NCBI GenBank assembly: GCA_001179505.1
Contig: CDMY01000652.1
Span: 1 to 36,417 of the forward strand
DNA length: 36,417 nt
Source of the DNA: Vitrella brassicaformis CCMP3155
Taxonomy: Eukaryota > Protista > Chromerida
Reading direction: 5' to 3'
This document shows positions 1,483 to 16,000 of the stretch, in pieces. The notes under the pieces are model-generated. The model saw only the letters and a program-made list of their open reading frames with translations. It searched no databases and was not told the DNA's origin. Both the position numbers and the translations under genes were made by a program. Each line of letters begins with the position of its first letter. Position 1 is the first letter of the stretch.

Positions 1483-2366
1483 CACGGAAGCGAGAAGTGG
1501 AGCGAGCGATTAAGGAGCCTTTCATATCGATGCGGACCGACTGACTCACGTGTGATTGTTTTTGATGTCTCGTGAACTCACAAGGCTTGAATCGGGTCGT
1601 GTGTCTGTGTCTCTACACGTGAAGGCTGGAATCGATTGGAAAACTTGGTATGTGTAAGACTTCCATGCATTTCACACTTGATTGTTGTCGTCTCTATGCG
1701 TGTGTGTGCTGTTCGCAAACACACACACACACACTGCCTGCTAGTTACACACGACAGATGAATGGAAACGTGCCTCAGAATATATCACACACTCACCAGC
1801 TCCTTCCCTCTACAGCAAAGAAAAAAGCAATCGTTTCCTGACTCGGCTGTGTGCATGTCTGGCCACTCGCCCCCCCTCGCTGTAATGGTACTCCATTATT
1901 GCAAGGTGATATAACGACTGTGTAGACAAACAATCGTGGCTGCACAATAAAGCCACACACACTCCACACACACGTGCATTCACCTCGTGCAAGCGCACTA
2001 ATGGTACAGTGTCACTGACTTGACATGGACCACGTCAGATGCACTCGGTGTGTTGCATGTGCCACCCACTTGATCGCTGGCTGCTTGATAAACAAACTTG
2101 TCCATCCACATATGTAGATACACACACGTATACACATCGATGTATGTATGTATGTATGTATGTACTCACAGACAATGGATGGACCATCCAGCCATCTCTC
2201 TATCCCGTGGGCCACGGGCCCCCCTTCTCCCCCGCCCCCACCCACCCTAGCAACAAATAATAAAGACACCCATCCCATCGACCAACGACCGACGAAGGAA
2301 GGCACAACCGAAAACCTTCTCGCCTCCCCAGCCGCACCGCAGCACGACACAAGTCACACTACACCC

Positions 2367-4899
2367 TTACCAGACTCTGCTGGGCGGAACCCTGGGCTCC
2401 ATCAGGCCAGGAGCGAACTCAGGCAGCACCGTCCCCGTGTGGGCGCCCCTTGTCGGCTGTCTCGACGTGGCGCGAGTGGTGCCCTGTGATGCTGACGCTG
2501 ACGCCGAGGCAGGGGCATCACTCTCTGGCCGGACCTTGACGACGGCAATGGGTGTGGCCTCGACCCACTTCTCGTGTGCCGAGTGGCGGATGATCTTCAT
2601 GACCCGCTCGATGGGTTTTCTGCATAATGGGCACTCTGGCTTCACTTTGTGCTTGCGCATGTGCTTGGACTTGAGGGGCAGCTCGATCAGCTCCACGGCA
2701 CACTCCTCACATAACCTGCCCACACAGCAATAGTTCTCAGGTCGGTTCTGTGGCCCCTTTATCCCGTACTCACTCACCCTCCGTGTCCACATGGCAACAG
2801 CAAGGTCTCTCTCGGCGCATCGAAGCAGATGGTGCACTGCGCGCCGGTATCCAGGTCGCCCATGGTGTCGTCGTGTTTATACCTCTCCACCTCATCCTCA
2901 CCGCCGCCACCCTCCTTGCCGATCACACGAGCACACGTGTCCGGCGATGTCGGCCCCTCATCCGAAATCGATTGGCCGGCTCTCGCGCTCGTGCCATTGC
3001 TGGCAGATGCAGCTTGGCCATCGCCGCTGCTGGAAGCGGCCACCGGGGCGGCAGGTGAACCGCCTGCATACACAGACAGACAGACAGACAGACAGAGAGA
3101 CACCCATCAGAATGTTCGGTGTGCCGTTGTCCGCTTCAGCCCGCATACCTTTGTTGCCGATGACGACTGGTGCTGCGCTAAGAGTGGCGTCCGATGACAT
3201 GCCCGAGTGCTGCCTGGGTGTGTCGTTGATTGAGAAGGATGGGTCGGGGGGCGTGGAGGCGATGAAAGAGGGGGAGGGCGACACACCGTCTCTGGCGCTG
3301 CCTCGCCGGGAGCGCTGAGAGCGAGATGAAGGGATCTTGAACACCCTGCCGCACACGTGAGACACACACGAATGATAGATAGGATCGTGCTTTGCCGCGT
3401 GTGGTGCTGTCTGTCACTCTTACTTGAAAAAGTGGCTGTTGAGCTGCCTTAGTAGCATGGGTGGAGCGGCGCCTGCATTCACCAAACACGACAGAGCAAA
3501 TCAACACGTCGCGCGCCTCCCCTCCCTTGTGTCTTGACACGTCCGTGCGTACTTGAGTCAGATCGCCCTGGCTGGCCGTTGGTCTTCATGACGTCATAGG
3601 CGGGTGGGATGTCACTGAGGCTCTGTCGACGGCGCTCCCGACGGCTGCGTGAGTGCTGTCGTGGTCCAGGCTGAGCGTTCATGCCATTCATACCCGTCTC
3701 GAGATCAAGGGGAGGGCGCTGCTTGCCTGCAGGCATATAATCGAATACCGGCGGTGTGGTGTGTGGCAGACAGGATGGATGGATGGATGGGCCGGTGAGA
3801 GGTTGTTGACCTACCTGCGATCCAGAGCCCGGCGCAGCAGCAGATGGTTGCCGTGGCAGCCATGAACCCGATGCTCCAAGAAGGAACCAACATGCTTGGA
3901 ACCTCCTCCTTGGAGCCGTCCCTATTATCATCCCTATCACCGGTGTCGCCGTCGTCGTCAGCATCACGATTGCCGTCACGATCAAGCCCCCATGGTGACG
4001 AGAAGCCCCTTCCCTCCAGGTCGCTCGACGACAGATAGTCTGATCGTGCACGGATGGCCTCGAGAGTGTTGTCGCACGTAGTGCCGTCTGCACACTTGAG
4101 GCTGCCCGAGACCAATTTGAGGCCGCAGGTTGTGTTGTTGGCGCCGGGCTTGTCAAAGCCACAGAGGGAAAGGTCGCACATGGTGACTTTGGGGTCACGA
4201 ATCGCGTCGATGGCCTCATCGCCAGAGCCAGGCTGGTCCACCCAATCACGGCATGGGCACACGAGAACGGAGTTCCTGACGGATGGCGGGCTGGGTGCGC
4301 CGCGCAAAGCGGCTGCAGTAGAGGTGACGTTGCGATAGAATCCCCTTATAGGCATGCGGCCACTGTTCGGCTCGTGGAGCTGACACAGGTCGAGGAGGCA
4401 CTTGTAGCTATAGTCCCCCTCAATCACAGGACACTCCCCCCAACCAGCAGGACAGTATCTTGGCCCAGAGATGACTCCGGCGTCCTCGTTCATCCTCGGC
4501 CTGACCTGTGACGCCTGCCCACTGTAGATCTTCAAGTCGCAGGTCTTGGTCACCCCTCGAAAAGAAAAAAACTCGCAAGCGGGGTGCTCCTGACATGCCC
4601 TCTGACACGCGAGGGCGGATGGGAGCCGCTGCTCACGACGGTCGCCGCCCACAAAGCCGATGCCCCGCTGGAAGCACCACGAATCGTCGCTCCCCTCACC
4701 ACCATCGGAACCCGCTACAACAAGGAACACACACACGTTTGACGAAGGACTTGAGTTCATCAGCAAGCAGATCTTTCCTCCATGTTTGTCCATATCACTC
4801 ACTCTGTGCGAGGCTGCTGCTTGCGATGAGGCACAATACAGCCACCAACGAAGGCAGGGGGGCACGCCACAATCCACGAACCATCATGCCGATAGACAT
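2367..4899 (-). CDS. Type I membrane protein: signal peptide + PAN/Apple domain + Cys-rich stalk + TM + cytoplasmic C3HC4 RING (putative receptor-type E3 ligase), about 683 aa
   Basis: Seven GT-AG exons with consistent phases: 4899-4803, 4714-3815, 3726-3553, 3472-3424, 3345-3149, 3063-2778, 2715-2367. Signal peptide MSIGMMVRGLWRAPLPSLVAVLCLIASSSLA. Six-Cys Apple pattern WCFQRG...ACQRACQEHPACEFFSF...TCDLK...SGPRYC. TM SWSIGFMAATATICCCAGLWIA. RING CTICFD-x9-PCGHGGLCEECA...ECPLCR. The final stop could lie further downstream if another intron starts near 2370. Confidence 0.8.
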
Positions 4900-4992
4900 A
4901 ATGTTTTCCAGGTCTCTCGCTTCATGACCAGTATCAAACCGTCTTCCTCGCTCCTCCTGTTAACGTGTTTGCCTGTTCCGGCTTCTCTAGAG

Positions 4993-5110: not shown

Positions 5111-7365
5111 ATGAAAAGCGGCAGATTGATGATCACTTCGACACTCATCTGCTTGCATATCGGCAGTGCAGCATCAGGGGAGGCTATTCCTCTCGTCAGG
5201 AGGTCAGCAAGCGTCGCCCCGCCATTCATCCATCGGCTCCCGGCAGACGTTGCAACGCCGCAGTTCTTGCAGAGGACAACTGGTGGCCGCCGGCACCATG
5301 CTAAGAAGCTTCAACCACTTGTCTGGCCCGCAGCCTTGTCACGGCTTTCTGCAAAACCCACACAAGCCGAGCAAGAGCAGCAGACGAAAGCGCCAGACGC
5401 GTCATTCGAGCCCATCAGCAGCACTGACGCCGAGTCGCCAGCGCTCCGGCCTTTCGTGATTCTTGCGGTACTGACCCTGGTCTATCTCTCCAATCAATGG
5501 TCCCGCACTTTGCTTTACTATCTGGTGGATTTCAACGACTCCGTCAGCGAGTCCCTTGGCCCACCCACCGAGGCCGCCAGGCGGCTGATCAACATCGACC
5601 TGGGCTTTGACGAGAAGCAGTACTCCTTCATCGCCTCGTTCGGCTTCACCATCTTCTTCTCGGCAGCAGGCTTCTTTGCTGGTGGACAGGTGGACAAGAT
5701 GAGTCGGAGAGTCGCCACAGGGCTGCCGGCACTCGGATGGGCGGCCATGACGGCTCTTCAGGCTGGGGCGCAGTCGTTTGGTCAGCTGTTTGGCCTCAGG
5801 GTGGGCCAGGGGGTGTTCATGGCATTCACCACGCCCGCTGCTTACGCGCTGCTGGCCGATATTTTCCCCGCGAACCAGCGGGCGACGGCCAACTCCTTCT
5901 ACGTGTCGGCCGTCTATCTGGGGCAGGTCACTCAGCAATTGCACAGCCGCCACACACACTCACTCACTAACAATGAATGGCTGGTTGCTGTGTGTGTTTG
6001 TGGGTGTGGTTGCATGCAGTAGGCCCTTGCCTCGCTGAGTATCCTTCTGAATGAGCAGCTCGGCTGGAGGGCGGTCACGAGTATCGTGGCTGCCTTCGCA
6101 GCGACGTCGGGCATCCTATCCCTCCTCCTGGTTACCGACCCACGTGACGCCACTGCAGGCAGCCAGATGGCGAGAACGATCGACGAAGACAAAGCCGGCC
6201 AGGGGAGGGAGGAGGGAGAAAGGAGAGAGGTGGGCGTGCTGGGCACGTGGGTGGATCAGAGGAGGGTGGTGGGGGAGGTCCTGTCGTCTGATGTCGTGAA
6301 GCTCGTGATACTCGCCTCGGTCGTGAGAATCGCGGCTGGCCTCTCAATCGGCGTGTGGAAGGTCAGCTGGCAACACACGTATCTATGTTAACAAGAAGAT
6401 GTATGTGTCCATGCGATTTGCTGCAACAGGGCCCACTGTATCGCGCCTGCTTCCCCGACAGCATGGCGGCCTTCTCTGTGCTGAATGCTGGCATCGTTGG
6501 TGCCGTAGGGGCGGGGTCTTCTCTGCTGGGCGGCGCTCTTGCCGACAGGCTCGCCGAGAAGGACGAGAGCATCCGCGCGTGGATCCCAGCTGTCGGTAGG
6601 CGGCAGATGCAGAGAGAGAGAGAGAGAGATAGAGAGAGAGAGAGAAGCTAGCCGTGGGTGTTTGCCATGTGTCCCTGCACTTGCTGCACTGTCCATCCAT
6701 CAGGGTCATTCTTGGCTGCTCCGCTGTGGATGGGCGTGTGTCTGGCGGACAGTTTCGAGCTGTCGGCCTTCCTGCTGTTGCTCGAGTATCTTGCCGCGGA
6801 GTGCTGGTTTGGCCCGACTGTAGCAATACTACAGGTGGGCAACACTGAGTGCCTCAATGCCATGCCACCAATGCATTCATTCAATGTGTGTCTTGTCTTG
6901 TGTTTGGTACGTCACCTCACCGGTCAGTCCAACACGCCCAGTCAGTACAGGGGGACGGCACAAGGTGAGGTGCGCACATCCATCCATGCCCCCCTCAGCA
7001 TTGCACGCTGCGTCTGTCTGTCTGTGTGTGTCTGTCTGTCTGTCTGTCTGTTCAGGGCTCTTTCAGTTCAGTAATCTCCTCAGCAACACACTTCCAGTGG
7101 TCAGCAGCCGAGCCACCAAGCCCGAGAATCCTCTCTGCATCCACTGATGTCCTTGCTGCGACGTTCATGTGTTCGTTCATTGCTGCAGCTGCTGGGAAGT
7201 CTGATGACGTCCTTTGCCCTGAAAGATGTGGTGGCCTGGGGGGTGGCTGCCGCCTACATGGTATCCGGCGGCCTCTTTGTGGCATTGGGGCAGAGGATCA
7301 AGGCTGCCACAGCCGCTCCTGGAGGGGGGCGGGTGGATGCGAATATTACCGATGCGACAATGTAG
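5111..7365 (+). CDS. Major facilitator superfamily transporter (spinster-like), possibly with a bipartite plastid-targeting leader, about 569 aa
   Basis: Seven in-phase exons: 5111-5926, 6023-6361, 6430-6595, 6704-6834, 6928-6964, 7056-7099, 7189-7365. MFS hallmarks: GGQVDKMSRR (motif A-like), RVGQGVFMAFTTPAAYALLADIFPANQRATANSFY, GGALADRL, LAAECWFGPTVAIL. About 12 hydrophobic segments. The start may be 5111 or 5129. Confidence 0.9.
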
Positions 7366-10013: not shown

Positions 10014-13000
10014 CTAGTCGTCCTCCAGTCCCAGACCCAGCCCCTTCATCAGGTCCTGACGCGACGCCTGACCGCCCGTCAGATTGCCGCCCTCAACATT
10101 CAACTCAGACGACGAACCGAGGTCCTGTGTGTCGTGCGACATGAGCGCACACCCATGCATGCATAACACAAAGGCGTGTGTGTATGTCTCCCCGGCTCAC
10201 CTTGAGCACTCCGGCCTGTCGGTTGTCGATCAGACGCCCGACGCCCTCGGTGCTGAGGATCTCCTGCACGGACAGGGCAAGTGCGTGTGCACAACGTGAC
10301 AAGGAAGAGCCGTGTGTGGGTGTGGCGCGCTGGCTGACCTTCATGGTGTCTCGCTCTCTGACGTCTGGAGGCAACATCGACTCGAGCAACGCATCGCTTC
10401 TGCATGAGCGACACACGGACATATACAAACATGACAACCGACAGACACCTGCAGCGTGGATGCCCACTTTGTTGTGTCTCCAGGTCTGCTCTTCGGTTTG
10501 TCGTCCTGTCCTCCTTCCCCGAGTGCCAGTTCTGTGGCCTTGCGCTGCAGCGCCATGGCCGCCTTGCCCACACCGATGTCCTCCAAAAGCGCATCTGCAT
10601 GCACGCGTCAGTAAACCGGTGAATGAGGCAGACCAGAATGGTCTGTGTGTGTGTGTGTGTGTGACCGATGTTTGAGTCGAGCTGGCCGGTGTCTGGTTTG
10701 CGGCCACTCAGGTCTCCCTGCCACTGCACGTCCTCGAGGTCACACCGCTGAAGCAAATCCTGCACACACACACACACACACACAACCATCGCGCCCACCG
10801 TGACCATCGTGTCTTTCATGTCTCTCTTGGCGACGGTCCGTCACCTGCAGGGAGGCCACGTCGACCTGCTGCATGTCTTTCTTGACCATATCTTCTGGCT
10901 TGAGCTCGGCCGGCTGCACTGGGAGGAAAGGGGGAGGGGGCAGCCGGGGGCGCTTGCGCAGAAACGACCACACCGACCGCCTGGGAAAAGGGATACGCAC
11001 ACACATTTCATTCATGCGCTTTGTGTGCGTGTGCCATGGTATGTGCCATGTCTCTACCTGACGAGCTGGCATTGGTCCTCTGCGCAGTTGGGCGGGGGCG
11101 CGGTCAGGCTTAGGAGACTCAGCAGGGCCGTCATGAAACGACCATCTCTCATAAATGGCTCGAGCTTCGGCACACGGACGAGCTGCAGCGTCAGAGCCAA
11201 TGCGGGATACGGCAGGTGACGCGCGAAGGGCAGCACCGCAGCAAGAAACGCCTCCACCTCTTCATGCCACGGCATCTTCACCTCCGGCATCTTGTCGCTC
11301 CCACGGCTGGACGCCCGGCTCAGGCCGCTCTGCGGCGTCCCCAGCATCACCTTCCGCTCCCTGGAAGCAGGCTGCTGCAGGAAAGCCGACACCAAAGCAG
11401 AGGAGGAGTCCTGGGCTTTGGGTGACGGGAGTCGGGTGATGGGTGGTGCCACTGGTCCGAGGAGGGGGGCGTCCAGCTGCTGACGGCTGGCAGACTTGGC
11501 TTTGGGGCCGAGGGAGGGGCGCTTGGGTTTGTGAGGGGGAGGGGGGAGGGGCGGTGGAGGGAGGGTGCCTTGGGGGTCGGAGAGTGCGACGTATGCCACG
11601 AAGATGGTGACTGTGAGGAGGGATGCGGCCTTTTGGCGGATGAGGACGGGGATGATGTGGCTGAACGACTTGAACATGCCCTTGGTCAGCAACACCTGCA
11701 GACATGCACACACAGACCCATTGATCAATCAATGTGTGTTGTGTTGTGTGGATGAGTGTGGCGTTCGTTCCACACACTTGTTTCATGGAGGGTGAGTTGG
11801 ACACCCACGTGGAGACAGTCAGCACAATCACATGCAGCACCTGCAACATGACAGACATGCACCCCTCTCCCATGAGACAGACATCTTTCACCCCCCGATC
11901 TCTTCCCTCTTGTCTCACCGGCTGGTCGAACAGCCACTCCAGCGCACAGGCAGCAATCCTCCCACGTTCACTCTCCCCCAGCCCGCCGTACACATCTGCA
12001 CTCTCACTCTCCTCACCACCGAACGCCACGCTCTTTCTCTTGGCCAACCCTCCCCCGAGCACCACACCCTTCCCACCCATCCCGCCCCCCTGCACCTTCG
12101 ACAGCTCAGCCGCTACCGCAATCTCGTTGTACGCCGCCGGCCAGTGGTGTGCGATGGATATGTGCGTCTTGAGGAGCAGGGCGACCAGGGGCGGCCGTGT
12201 GGTGTCGACCTCCATGATTTGGCACGACAGGCGGCAGAAGAGGCGGAATGGTGCGGGGGCCACCAGCACCCGGAGGAAAGGGCTGCTGCGCTGGCAGGAG
12301 AGCAGGAAGACCTGCAGGACTCGGATGGTCTCTGCCGCAGAGATGGAGGCCCGCATGGTCGTTGAGGCGGGTGTCGCGGCGCCGCTTCCACCCTCGGTTG
12401 CGTGTGCTGCTCTGGGTGAGAGGTGCTGTGTGCGGGGGCCGGTTCCGAGGGCGTGTGACATGCTGACGGAGAGTGGGGTGCCGGTTGGGGGGCGACGGAC
12501 GCCCCGCTGGGCGGGGCGGTACATGACGACACGCTTGAGAATGGCCTGATGGATGGATGTACACACATGAACGGAGAGAGGTGAGGAGATGAGATGGATG
12601 GGTGGCTGCACACGCGCACCAGGACGAGCAGGCGGTCTGGGGGTAGGGGAAGGCTCTCGCGCCAGAGAGACCGCAGACACACCTGAGACAGACACAGAGG
12701 AGCAACGCAACGCGCTAAAGAGATAGGGTCTCATATACCTTTATCCGTACCGTACCCGTAGTGCGTGCGCCCAATGTGTGGTCAACATGAAACACCCATG
12801 TCTGCACGAGACAACGTCACACACTAACACAGCTACACCTGCCCTGCCCTTCACTTTTTTCTCGCCACACCTTCTGAGAAAGGCCGATGTCTTGTCCCCA
12901 ATGCGCGGCGACGTCACCAGGACGAAGCGCCGTTGCGTGGTGGTGGCAGCGTCTTCATCCTCCTCGTCGCCCTCCGCCCCCCCGGTGGCCTTGCTGCCCG

Positions 13001-16000
13001 AGGCAGACCCACCAGAGACTTCACCAGATGGCGCCTCGCTGCGGGGGCTGACAGCCTGACTCCTGGCAGCGCTTTGGCTGGTGTCCAGTCTGACCTTGGT
13101 CTTCTCGAGACGCGCCACGGCTTCAAGGGTGGCCTCTCTTGTTGGCAGGTCTTGTGCTGTGTCCTCCTGCTGACCCGCCTCTGGAAAAGGAGAATGGACG
13201 AACGGTCGATTGTGTTGTGTGTGTTGTGTGTGTTGTGTGTGTGTGTGTGCACCCACCGGTGACGGGAGTCTTGACGCCCCTGAAGGCTTCAGACTCGATG
13301 TGCATCGGCCGCAACGACTCGTCATCCGCCGTGCTCTCAGGGATCGGCACGGCGGGAGACCTCGGAGACGCCGTCTGGAATGGTTGGAGGCCACCACACA
13401 CACACACACACACACACGTCTCCTCACTTTCTCACACGGTGCTATCGGCTCACCTTTCCGGTTGCCTGCATCATGCCCAGCTCATTGGCTGTCTTGGTCA
13501 GCATCTCGTCAAAGACGCGATAGTCGGCAGTCGGGGAGTCTTTGGCCTGCGGCCGCCCCTTGCTGCTGTCCTTGCTGGCCTGCAGCTTGGTCTGAGGGGT
13601 TCCCTTGGGGGTCTTGGTGCGCATCTCCTTCATCTCTTTGGGGATGGGGGGCTTGTCCAGCACCAACAGACACTGCAACCAACAAGTCCGTCCATCCATC
13701 CACACACGGTAGGTGAGACATGGGATACCTACCTGTGCGAGATCTTTAAGTAGGTTGATCAGCTTGAGTTCCATCTCGAGTGTCAGCTCGGGCGACAAAC
13801 CAACCCACACGCCGCCACCAGCAGCAGTCGGGGCAGGCTGCCCTCCCACTCCAAGCGATGGGATTGCTACCTGGGGCGGCGCACTTGATGGCGCTGTAGG
13901 CAAAGGATGGATCGTCTCTATGTCTGTCTCCATTTGGCATGGATGCGTACCTCCTGGCGGCCCGTCGAGTGTGGCCCTGAACTCCAGCTCCTCCTCAGAT
14001 GACGCTGCGTCGCGATCTGACAGACACACACAAAAAAGTGCTGGGGGTGTGATGGCCAGTTAGTGTGTCTGTCTGTCTACCTGCGAGTCCTGCAGGTGGT
14101 CGTCTGGGGCTGCCTGTGTCTGCCGATGCTGCCTGCTGCATCTTCTTGTGTGCCACACGCGCCTGCGTCTTAAGCACTACAGGCACACACACGCACATCA
14201 CATCATCAGGGGAGATGGGATGAGCATTTCTCTCCCCCTCACGTCTCATCTGGTCGAGAGATGTGACTTCGAATGTTCCTGAGGGATGGAGAGAGACAGA
14301 CGGAATTGCACACTCGCCGGAGTGAGTGTTGCTTCCTCACCTCCGTTGTGTCCCAGCCAGTCCAGAAGACGCTCAAAGGTCTGAGTGCGACACAAACAAA
14401 CAGAGGTGTACATGTGTCCACCCTCCATATGTTTGCCCTGCTCTGCCTTGGGTGGTGTCTTTGCCTGGCTGACCACGCAGAGCAATGAGTCGAGGTCTTT
14501 AGGGAATGCGTATCTCGATGGCGGTATGTCTTGGTACAGGAAACACAGAAAGACATACAGCAAGCTGCAGTAGGGCAGGTTGTCGTACTCGAGACGCAAC
14601 CCCTGCGCACAGAGGCACACAGAGGCACGTGTGGTGTGCATACCATATCTGCCGTGTGTCTGTCTGGTCAGGTCAGTCTAGCCTGCCTGCCTGCAATGTG
14701 CGGAGGAAGGTCTCCAGCACTTGCTGCGCCAGGCTCTCCGGGTATTGTGCCGCGAAACGGCGACACACACGGAGGAGAGAGGGCAGCAGAGCCGACTCCA
14801 TCAATCCACGCTTCGTCGTCGCCACGCTGAGCATAAGAGATAGATACCCCGAATTTTCGTTCAGCTATTGTTTGTGCGTAGATGGAAGTGGTGACTGACT
14901 GACGTTTTGAGCACTTCCTTCAGTATTGGCCTCGCTTGGAAGCTGGCCAGGGGCACCACCTCCAGCAGACAGCACTGGACGCACAGCAACAAACTGTCCT
15001 CAAGCAGAGAGAGACACGTGCCGTCTTCCACAAATACCAACCAGGTCTGCTTGCATGGGCTTGATTTGGAAGTACTGGCGGAAGCACATCTCCACCACGC
15101 TGCATCCGCCCAGCGGAAAACACACACACGCGCACATCGTTCATGTGTGAATGCATTGAGTGTACGCACCCTCCTGCCTGCGACACACTGTCTTCGTTGA
15201 TGTAGACCGACAGGAAGCCCGCTGCCTGGATGAATCGATGAGAGACAGGTACATTCACACGCAGAGAGACAACTGTCGTCGCAACTGACCATTGCGATAG
15301 CGGCCCTGACGCACTCGAAGTCCTTGGCCATGGCGGCTGTGGTGCAGATGGCCGGCAGGGACACGTCAACCAGCGCAAGAATGTCGCGCAAGTGCTGCAT
15401 GGTGCACAGAACATCGCAGAAGTCACCATGTCTCGCTGCGGTCGGGTTGAGGTGCTCACTTCCTGCAGCCTTGGTTCGCACGTGGCCACCCTCCTCCAAG
15501 CCCTGCACAGCTGACGGCAGGCCAAGGCACGCACCTGGGGAGGCGGCAGCTGGTTGGTCTCCACAGGGGCCTTCCAGATGCCAAGACCAGACACCATCGC
15601 GTGCAACACCCTGAGATGGAAGAATCCGAGGGCATGGATACTCGCCTCAGAAAAGGCATCGGTGAATGAATGTGCTGGCTGGCTCACTTGTAGAAATTGT
15701 CAACTAGCGCCAGCACAGGGTGCTGCGGCGCCTTGGTTGTCGGAGGGGTCTCTGCAAATGAAAGAGGCAACCTGGAATCGTGCCCTTGCTCGCGAGTGGC
15801 CCAGGTATGTGTGTCTGTTCGCACCGTGGCAGACACTGAGGAGGTGCTGCGATGCCAAGGCACTGACCATGTTGAACAGCTGCACATACTGATCTGTATG
15901 TGTTGGGTGCGGACATAGACAGATAGACAGATGGATAGGTTGAGAGAAGAGATTGGAGGAAGACCAGTCAGTCAACTTACCAACAGTGGCCTCCCTCCTC

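Follow-up and report, generated by a model that had tools for sequence, protein, structure and literature searches.

An expressed gene of Vitrella brassicaformis predicted to encode a transmembrane RING ubiquitin ligase with an Apple/PAN ectodomain

Results

The gene and its transcript

The window analysed here is the whole of a 36,417-nucleotide stretch of Vitrella brassicaformis CCMP3155 (assembly GCA_001179505.1, contig CDMY01000652.1, positions 1 to 36,417 of the forward strand). On its minus strand, at 4899-2367, lies a gene whose product would combine a signal peptide, an Apple/PAN domain, a further cysteine-rich module, a single transmembrane helix and a RING domain. Seven exons are joined in frame via six GT..AG introns, giving a coding sequence (CDS) of 2052 nt and a protein of 683 aa (Table 1). 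The initial annotation had proposed that several scattered open reading frames (ORFs) were one such gene, with six GT-AG introns and a product of about 683 aa. In-frame joining bears this out, and the mechanical ORF list does indeed split the exons over many unrelated ORFs.

The spliced product is identical, from Met5 on, to a public V. brassicaformis CCMP3155 protein of 679 aa, referred to below as P0001, which derives from the same assembly and from the window's own contig. Its public names are limited to 'unnamed protein product' and 'RING-type domain-containing protein', and its precomputed Pfam matches comprise PAN_1 and several RING models, including zf-C3HC4_3. Because an identical public protein already carries PAN_1 and zf-C3HC4_3 matches, the gene model is not new: the structure of the gene was already public, with no function attached to it. 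Residues are numbered below according to P0001 unless the 683-aa model is specified; model residues are P0001 residues + 4.

Splicing was checked on public assembled transcript contigs from four runs (X1, X3, X6 and X7). In X6 and in X7, one contig carried the skips 4714/4803, 3725/3814, 3471/3552, 3344/3423 and 2713/2776, and four of these five were also present in X1. In X3, which comes from the same sample as X7, the unspliced genomic form was found, with none of the skips. The sixth joint, 3149/3063, is missing from the joint table; it adjoins a (TGTC)n repeat (3059-3109) passed over by the aligner, and the contig coordinates leave exactly the expected 4-5 letters at this place. In X7, the contig between 4954 and 2315 has a length of 2159 nt, the exact sum of the model exons (152+900+174+49+197+286+401). 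Therefore the Apple-transmembrane part and the RING part are on one mRNA. The transcript was covered 48x and 147x in two assemblies. We conclude that the gene is expressed, and that one spliced mRNA encodes both halves of the protein, in agreement with the junctions first proposed from the DNA, to which intron 1 (4802-4715) was added.

An error of annotation or assembly, by which an Apple-transmembrane adhesin and a neighbouring RING gene would have been read as one, has in its favour just the prior that ab initio joins over six introns are error-prone. It is refuted by the contigs of X6 and X7, each of which spans the 5′ untranslated region (UTR), all exons and the sequence past the stop codon, and by the exact length of the latter. 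Moreover, the RING exists only once intron 6 has been removed. The two parts are therefore not borne by separate mRNAs, and we give the error a negligible probability.

Three in-frame start codons are candidates: 4899, 4887 (the one used in the public annotation) and 4884. All of them are inside the n-region of the signal peptide, so that the choice of the start is irrelevant to the architecture. An upstream ORF of 13 codons, out of frame with the CDS, starts in the 5′ UTR with an ATG at 4925 (minus strand) and ends with a TGA at 4886-4884; this stop overlaps the ATGATG at 4887-4882, where the public protein begins. Such a stop-start overlap could favour reinitiation at Met5 or Met6 over the first in-frame ATG, 4899.

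Table 1. Features of the Apple/PAN-RING gene; positions are those of the window
Feature	Positions	Strand	Basis or remark
5′ UTR	4900..4985	-	transcript contigs begin at 4985 (X6) and 4954 (X7)
Exon 1: start codon 4899 and predicted signal peptide	4803..4899	-	spliced model, hydropathy
Intron 1, GT..AG, 88 nt	4715..4802	-	joint in X6 and X7
Exon 2: Apple/PAN, Cys-rich module, stalk, predicted transmembrane helix	3815..4714	-	spliced model, transcripts
Apple/PAN domain, P0001 38-116, six conserved Cys and ISGPxxC	4452..4688	-	Pfam, alignment, AF2/Foldseek
Second Cys-rich ectodomain module, P0001 117-246, 10 Cys, 2 N-x-S/T	4062..4451	-	orphan
Acidic low-complexity stalk, P0001 247-303	3891..4061	-	composition
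Predicted single transmembrane helix, P0001 304-328	3816..3890	-	hydropathy
Intron 2, 88 nt	3727..3814	-	spliced model, transcript joint
Exon 3: basic juxtamembrane region	3553..3726	-	PPAY/YDVM at 3587-3607
Exon 4, 49 nt, portion of disordered linker	3424..3472	-	spliced model, transcripts
Exon 5: Ser/Pro-rich disordered linker with RxxS sites	3149..3345	-	spliced model, transcripts
Intron 5	3064..3148	-	holds (TGTC)n repeat
Exon 6: end of linker and first half of RING (2836-2778: Cys1, Cys2, Cys3, His4)	2778..3063	-	
Intron 6, 62 nt, interrupts RING between His4 and Cys5	2716..2777	-	joint in X1, X6 and X7
Exon 7: second half of RING (2715-2622: Cys5-Cys8), 80-aa tail, stop 2369-2367	2367..2715	-	
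3′ UTR	2254..2366	-	contig ends at 2315 (X7) and ~2254 (X1)

Membrane topology

The protein has two hydrophobic segments only, one at the N-terminus and one at model residues 308-332 (Kyte-Doolittle mean over 19 residues of about 1.85). Residues 1-28 resemble a signal peptide, with two Arg in the n-region, an h-region reading LPSLVAVLCLIA, and a c-region SSSLA followed by Q; by the -3/-1 rule, cleavage is predicted after SSSLA. The sole internal hydrophobic segment, residues 304-328 (Kyte-Doolittle mean 1.86), would form the transmembrane helix. It contains a CCC triplet near its cytosolic face. The residues directly after the helix are basic (K, R, then RSRRERRR), in keeping with the positive-inside rule. 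N-terminal of this segment are found 16 Cys, an even number, together with the N-glycosylation sequons, while the 212 residues between it and the RING contain a single Cys. The distribution of Cys and sequons and the basic cluster after the transmembrane segment favour a type I orientation, which would place the RING on the cytosolic side. By these heuristics of hydropathy, charge and Cys content, the protein would thus have a signal peptide and a single membrane span placed between ectodomain and RING. A bipartite leader directing the protein to the plastid was also considered and rejected as improbable, the stretch after the signal being acidic and followed by what would be disulfide-rich domains.

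The ectodomain

The Pfam model PAN_1 (PF00024; cutoff 21.4 bits) scored 34.6 bits when run on exon 2, and 32.8 bits when run on the complete protein. In an alignment with 27 other PAN domains, all six Apple Cys (residues 42, 65, 69, 75, 87 and 116) fall in the conserved Cys columns, and the ISGPxxC motif is matched as well. In Apple domains the disulfides are formed between C1 and C6, C2 and C5, and C3 and C4, and the same pairing is predicted here. An AlphaFold2 (AF2) model of the domain, built on the PAN alignment, had a predicted local distance difference test (pLDDT) value of 81, and shows the Apple fold, a central helix on an antiparallel sheet. Its best PDB match by Foldseek was the Sarcocystis muris galactose lectin SML-2 (TMq 0.75-0.77, root-mean-square deviation 1.7 Å), followed by apples 1-2 of Toxoplasma MIC4 (TgMIC4; TMq 0.71), Eimeria MIC5 (EtMIC5) and plasma kallikrein (0.68)/FXI; the Foldseek probability was 1.00 for SML-2, TgMIC4 and plasma kallikrein. 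By sequence, the PDB entries matched were the apples of plasma kallikrein/FXI, SML-2, EtMIC5 and TgMIC4, and the nearest relatives overall are coccidian multi-PAN proteins (Toxoplasma, Besnoitia, Neospora, Cystoisospora), then fish FXI-like proteins. From Pfam, the alignment and the AF2/Foldseek comparison, we conclude that the domain is a true member of the Apple/PAN family, with six Cys, and belongs to the microneme-lectin type.

Between the Apple domain and the stalk, residues 117-246 contain ten further Cys and two N-glycosylation sequons. This module gave zero Pfam matches at E up to 10, and compared by hhalign with a profile of 28 PAN sequences it reached a probability of 0.4%. In an exhaustive HMMER search of 1.84 billion representative proteins, no match extended past query residue ~122. 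An AF2 model of the whole ectodomain, computed from the single sequence, had a pLDDT of 34 and was not used. A second Apple domain at 117-300 had been hinted at by AMA-1/PAN clusters of the ESM Atlas; the scores of 0.56-0.61 are below the meaningful level, hhalign and Pfam were negative, and the candidate was rejected. The 10-Cys module is thus an orphan, matched by none of the families compared. It is followed by the stalk, rich in D, G, N and R, in which 17 of the 57 residues are acidic.

The cytosolic part

The linker (residues 329-540) is of low complexity, disordered and basic, with several RxxS sites. In its exon 3 portion, the motifs PPAY (PPxY) and YDVM (YxxPhi) overlap. A search by regular expression located a complete C3HC4 RING at residues 545-595 (model 549-599), in which all eight Zn ligands are present, and zf-C3HC4_3 (PF13920; cutoff 27 bits) scored 46.3 bits on the spliced protein. 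As its halves sit on exons 6 and 7, the RING forms only after splicing. It aligns to the RINGs of cIAP2, cIAP1, MEX3C, XIAP and MGRN1. Contact with a ubiquitin-conjugating enzyme (E2) was judged by a hydrophobic residue between Cys1 and Cys2, a Pro after Cys7 and an Arg after Cys8: these residues are kept, C-T-I-C and C-P-L-C-R aligning with cIAP2 and MEX3C. Relative to MEX3C, loop 2 contains a basic insert of 11 residues. The domain is thus best described as a RING-HC of the IAP/MEX3C/MGRN1 type and a putative E2-dependent ubiquitin ligase. The last 80 residues, forming the tail, have no Pfam match.

The order of parts given in the initial annotation, namely a signal peptide, an Apple/PAN domain, a transmembrane segment and a cytosolic RING-HC, is supported by hydropathy, Pfam and the charge pattern. 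Its attribution of the Apple domain to the type of apicomplexan microneme adhesins also holds, with SML-2, EtMIC5 and TgMIC4 at the top both by sequence and by fold. Its description of the ectodomain was right as to the Apple domain and incomplete otherwise, the additional Cys-rich orphan module of ~130 residues having gone unmentioned.

Relatives and precedents

With exon 2 as the query, the HMMER search returned 170 matches, all through the Apple domain only; in none of the best 149 of the 170 was a RING detected by phmmer or regular expression. A set of 5.8 billion proteins was searched by word index with three queries (ectodomain, RING plus tail, RING alone), and each of them returned P0001 itself and nothing else. 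Among the nearest ESM Atlas clusters, none pairs PAN with a RING. The structure matches proposed by the Atlas all had TM scores < 0.32 and were disregarded. The gene thus appears to be lineage-restricted and confined to a single species.

Is it then a young chimera, in which shuffling joined an Apple exon to a transmembrane-RING cassette, and which is transcribed with little or no selected function? Beyond the Apple domain, neither an orthologue nor a paralogue was detected among the 1.84 billion representatives, or in the word search with RING and tail, and a large share of the chain consists of long linkers of low complexity. Yet none of the 16 ectodomain Cys, the eight Zn ligands or the residues for E2 contact has been lost, six introns are precisely spliced, the frame is open over 683 codons and the transcript depth is substantial. 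We consider this origin distinctly unlikely.

As for the combination of PAN/Apple, transmembrane segment and RING, full-text literature searches found no paper describing it, and it is not mentioned in the chromerid genome paper, where extracellular architectures are surveyed. On these limited negatives, which do not extend to an InterPro architecture query, the combination, with its orphan module and its RING subtype, seems undescribed. The same had been supposed at the outset, and this stands insofar as neither a paper nor, among the nearest relatives, a second example came to light; it needs amending insofar as both domains had already been flagged publicly.

Comparison with known systems

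The PA-TM-RING ligases are defined by a PA ectodomain, a transmembrane segment and a RING-H2. Among the membrane RING proteins of humans, they stand out by an extracellular or luminal domain. In GRAIL this is the PA domain, which captures substrates on that side of the membrane, and the tails of membrane proteins are ubiquitinated (PMC4021871). With this family (GRAIL/RNF128, RNF13, RNF167, Goliath/RNF130, and the relatives RNF43 and ZNRF3), the Vitrella protein would have in common a signal peptide, a binding-type ectodomain, a single transmembrane segment and a cytosolic RING. It differs in the ectodomain, which consists of Apple/PAN plus the orphan Cys-rich module instead of PA, no PA-domain match being present in the Vitrella protein by Pfam at E up to 1-10. 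It differs also in the RING, which is C3HC4 (ligand 5 is a Cys) and not RING-H2, and in the linker between membrane and RING, ~210 disordered residues compared to a short one. Pfam, HMMER and the RING alignment detected no sequence relationship between the two. Since it lacks two of the three defining features (there is no PA domain, and the RING is HC rather than H2), the Vitrella protein is not a member of the PA-TM-RING family. That this family uses another ectodomain and a RING-H2 had been anticipated in the initial annotation and agrees with the literature (PMC4021871).

The Apple domain has 27-29% identity, with the six Cys conserved, to those of SML-2, Toxoplasma MIC4, Eimeria MIC5 and the coccidian multi-PAN proteins. 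These microneme lectins are soluble or contain multiple Apples, and have no RING, whereas the Vitrella protein has one Apple, its own predicted transmembrane segment and a RING. It is not an adhesin of the MIC4 type, a soluble secreted protein with tandem Apples that is delivered to micronemes, as a single Apple was found by Pfam and hhalign. Vitrella belongs to the sister lineage of Apicomplexa (PMC4501334).

With IAP, MEX3C and MGRN1, the protein has in common the RING signature C-x-I-C ... P-C-G-H ... C-x-x-C ... C-P-x-C-R; its RING is distinguished by being fused to a receptor-like chain with a predicted transmembrane segment, by the insert in loop 2 and by a position that is not C-terminal. 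The ligases of this group are cytosolic or peripherally tethered, and MGRN1 requires separate transmembrane adaptors. In plants, the G-type lectin (S-domain) receptor kinases place a PAN/Apple ectodomain and a single transmembrane segment before a cytosolic Ser/Thr kinase, and they contain B-lectin and S-locus glycoprotein domains as well. The output domain in Vitrella is instead a RING, and the protein has no Pfam match to kinase, B-lectin or S-locus glycoprotein families. Finally, green-algal clusters of the ESM Atlas with the architecture EGF_Teneurin-DUF8241-zf-C3HC4_3 join a Cys-rich module of extracellular type to the same RING subtype, and by language-model features they ranked among the nearest clusters; their ectodomain families are others, and with scores of 0.66-0.68, below the level of meaning, homology is not shown.

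Neighbouring genes and repeats

The head-to-head neighbour of the gene is a plus-strand gene for an MFS_1 transporter (CDS 5111-7365). The transcripts begin at ~4985/4954 on the minus strand for the RING gene and at ~5038/5055 on the plus strand for MFS_1, i.e. roughly 50-100 bp apart. With starts this close, one very short bidirectional promoter region serves both genes. On the other side, the gene is tail-to-tail with an unannotated plus-strand gene of 365 aa (CDS 385-1482, no Pfam match), whose long 3′ UTR ends at ~2222-2235, tens of bases from the 3′ end of the RING gene (~2254-2315). In X6, the transcripts of these two genes were merged into one contig of 4052 nt; the 3′ ends of the convergent genes therefore abut or overlap. 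Upstream, at 10014-14887 and beyond, the same contig has a large gene call of at least 1529 aa, with no Pfam match on record. In the window, no functional cluster was found around the RING gene, and no paralogue of any part of it elsewhere.

Short tandem repeats occur within two introns, the (TGTC)n of intron 5 mentioned above and a (CATC)n-like run in intron 2 (3765-3797). The latter recurs at many sites of the genome, as seen from the loose ends of several unrelated contigs.

Discussion

We favour the view that the gene encodes a type I single-pass membrane RING ubiquitin ligase (E3), acting in the manner of GRAIL and other PA-TM-RING ligases, with its ectodomain outside the cell or in a lumen; we would put its probability at about 0.55. 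The Cys-rich half would face the cell exterior or the lumen of a secretory or endosomal compartment, and bind a glycan or a glycoprotein. In the cytosol, the RING would recruit an E2 and ubiquitinate, on their cytosolic tails, either the protein itself or the membrane proteins that its ectodomain holds, which would then go to endocytosis or vacuolar degradation, as with GRAIL and other PA-TM-RING ligases. Through its PPAY and YDVM motifs, the protein might be linked to WW-domain (Nedd4-type) ligases and to sorting by AP adaptors. IAP-type RINGs often work as dimers, as do Apple domains (FXI, plant SRK), so that dimerisation of the ectodomain, ligand-driven or constitutive, may switch on the RING. 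This last step is speculative, because the RING has an unusual insert and is not C-terminal as in the IAPs.

Several points weigh against this view. The location, the ligand and the ligase activity are all predictions from sequence, and the signal peptide and transmembrane segment are deduced from hydropathy and composition. For some 130 residues of the ectodomain, no fold could be recognised. Motifs as short as PPxY and YxxPhi occur by chance. The RING, with its 11-residue loop-2 insert and the 80 residues that follow, is unlike the C-terminal RINGs of IAPs. HMMER detected no orthologue among the 1.84 billion representatives by which conservation and purifying selection could be judged. Finally, the sequence does not discriminate between the plasma membrane and an internal compartment.

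On the question of location, a different reading is that of an internal ligase for sorting or quality control, in the endoplasmic reticulum (ER), Golgi, endosome or vacuole, where a luminal Apple lectin would read glycosylated cargo and the RING would mark it for the vacuole. Candidate cargoes would be secreted PAN/glycoside-hydrolase proteins or cell-wall precursors, and plant RMR and animal RNF13/RNF167 offer parallels. The surface is in fact not the usual place of PA-TM-RING ligases, most of which reside in endosomes, lysosomes or the ER (PMC4021871). YDVM and PPAY in the tail are signals of the sorting type, and by fold the Apple domain comes closest to a lectin. Against this, the protein sequence contains no KDEL or di-lysine retention signal, nor any feature that would discriminate between compartments. 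Such an internal role is possible, but we do not think it probable.

A bolder proposal is that in Vitrella, and perhaps in chromerids, receptor ubiquitin ligases replace receptor kinases, interchangeable ectodomains being connected through a transmembrane segment to a cytosolic RING. Here a galactose-type glycan or a wall polymer would dimerise the Apple domain and activate the IAP-type RING, thereby signalling from surface ligand to ubiquitin. We hold this to be doubtful. The initial annotation had advanced direct signalling of this kind, from a surface ligand to ubiquitination; in placing the protein at the surface it went further than the evidence, from which such a role may at most be conjectured.

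Ectodomain-bearing single-pass RING ligases such as RNF43/ZNRF3 and GRAIL control which receptors remain on the cell surface. To our knowledge, such ligases are hardly known outside animals and plants. In the GRAIL-like reading preferred here, a free-living alga related to the apicomplexan parasites would have coupled directly to a ubiquitin ligase the type of Apple lectin with which those parasites attach to host cells. Taken alone, this is one uncharacterised gene of a single species, and the larger question is that of the whole receptor repertoire in Vitrella. If the protein is functional, it would represent another use of adhesion modules before parasitism arose, and would provide a simple, testable model of ectodomain-controlled ubiquitination.

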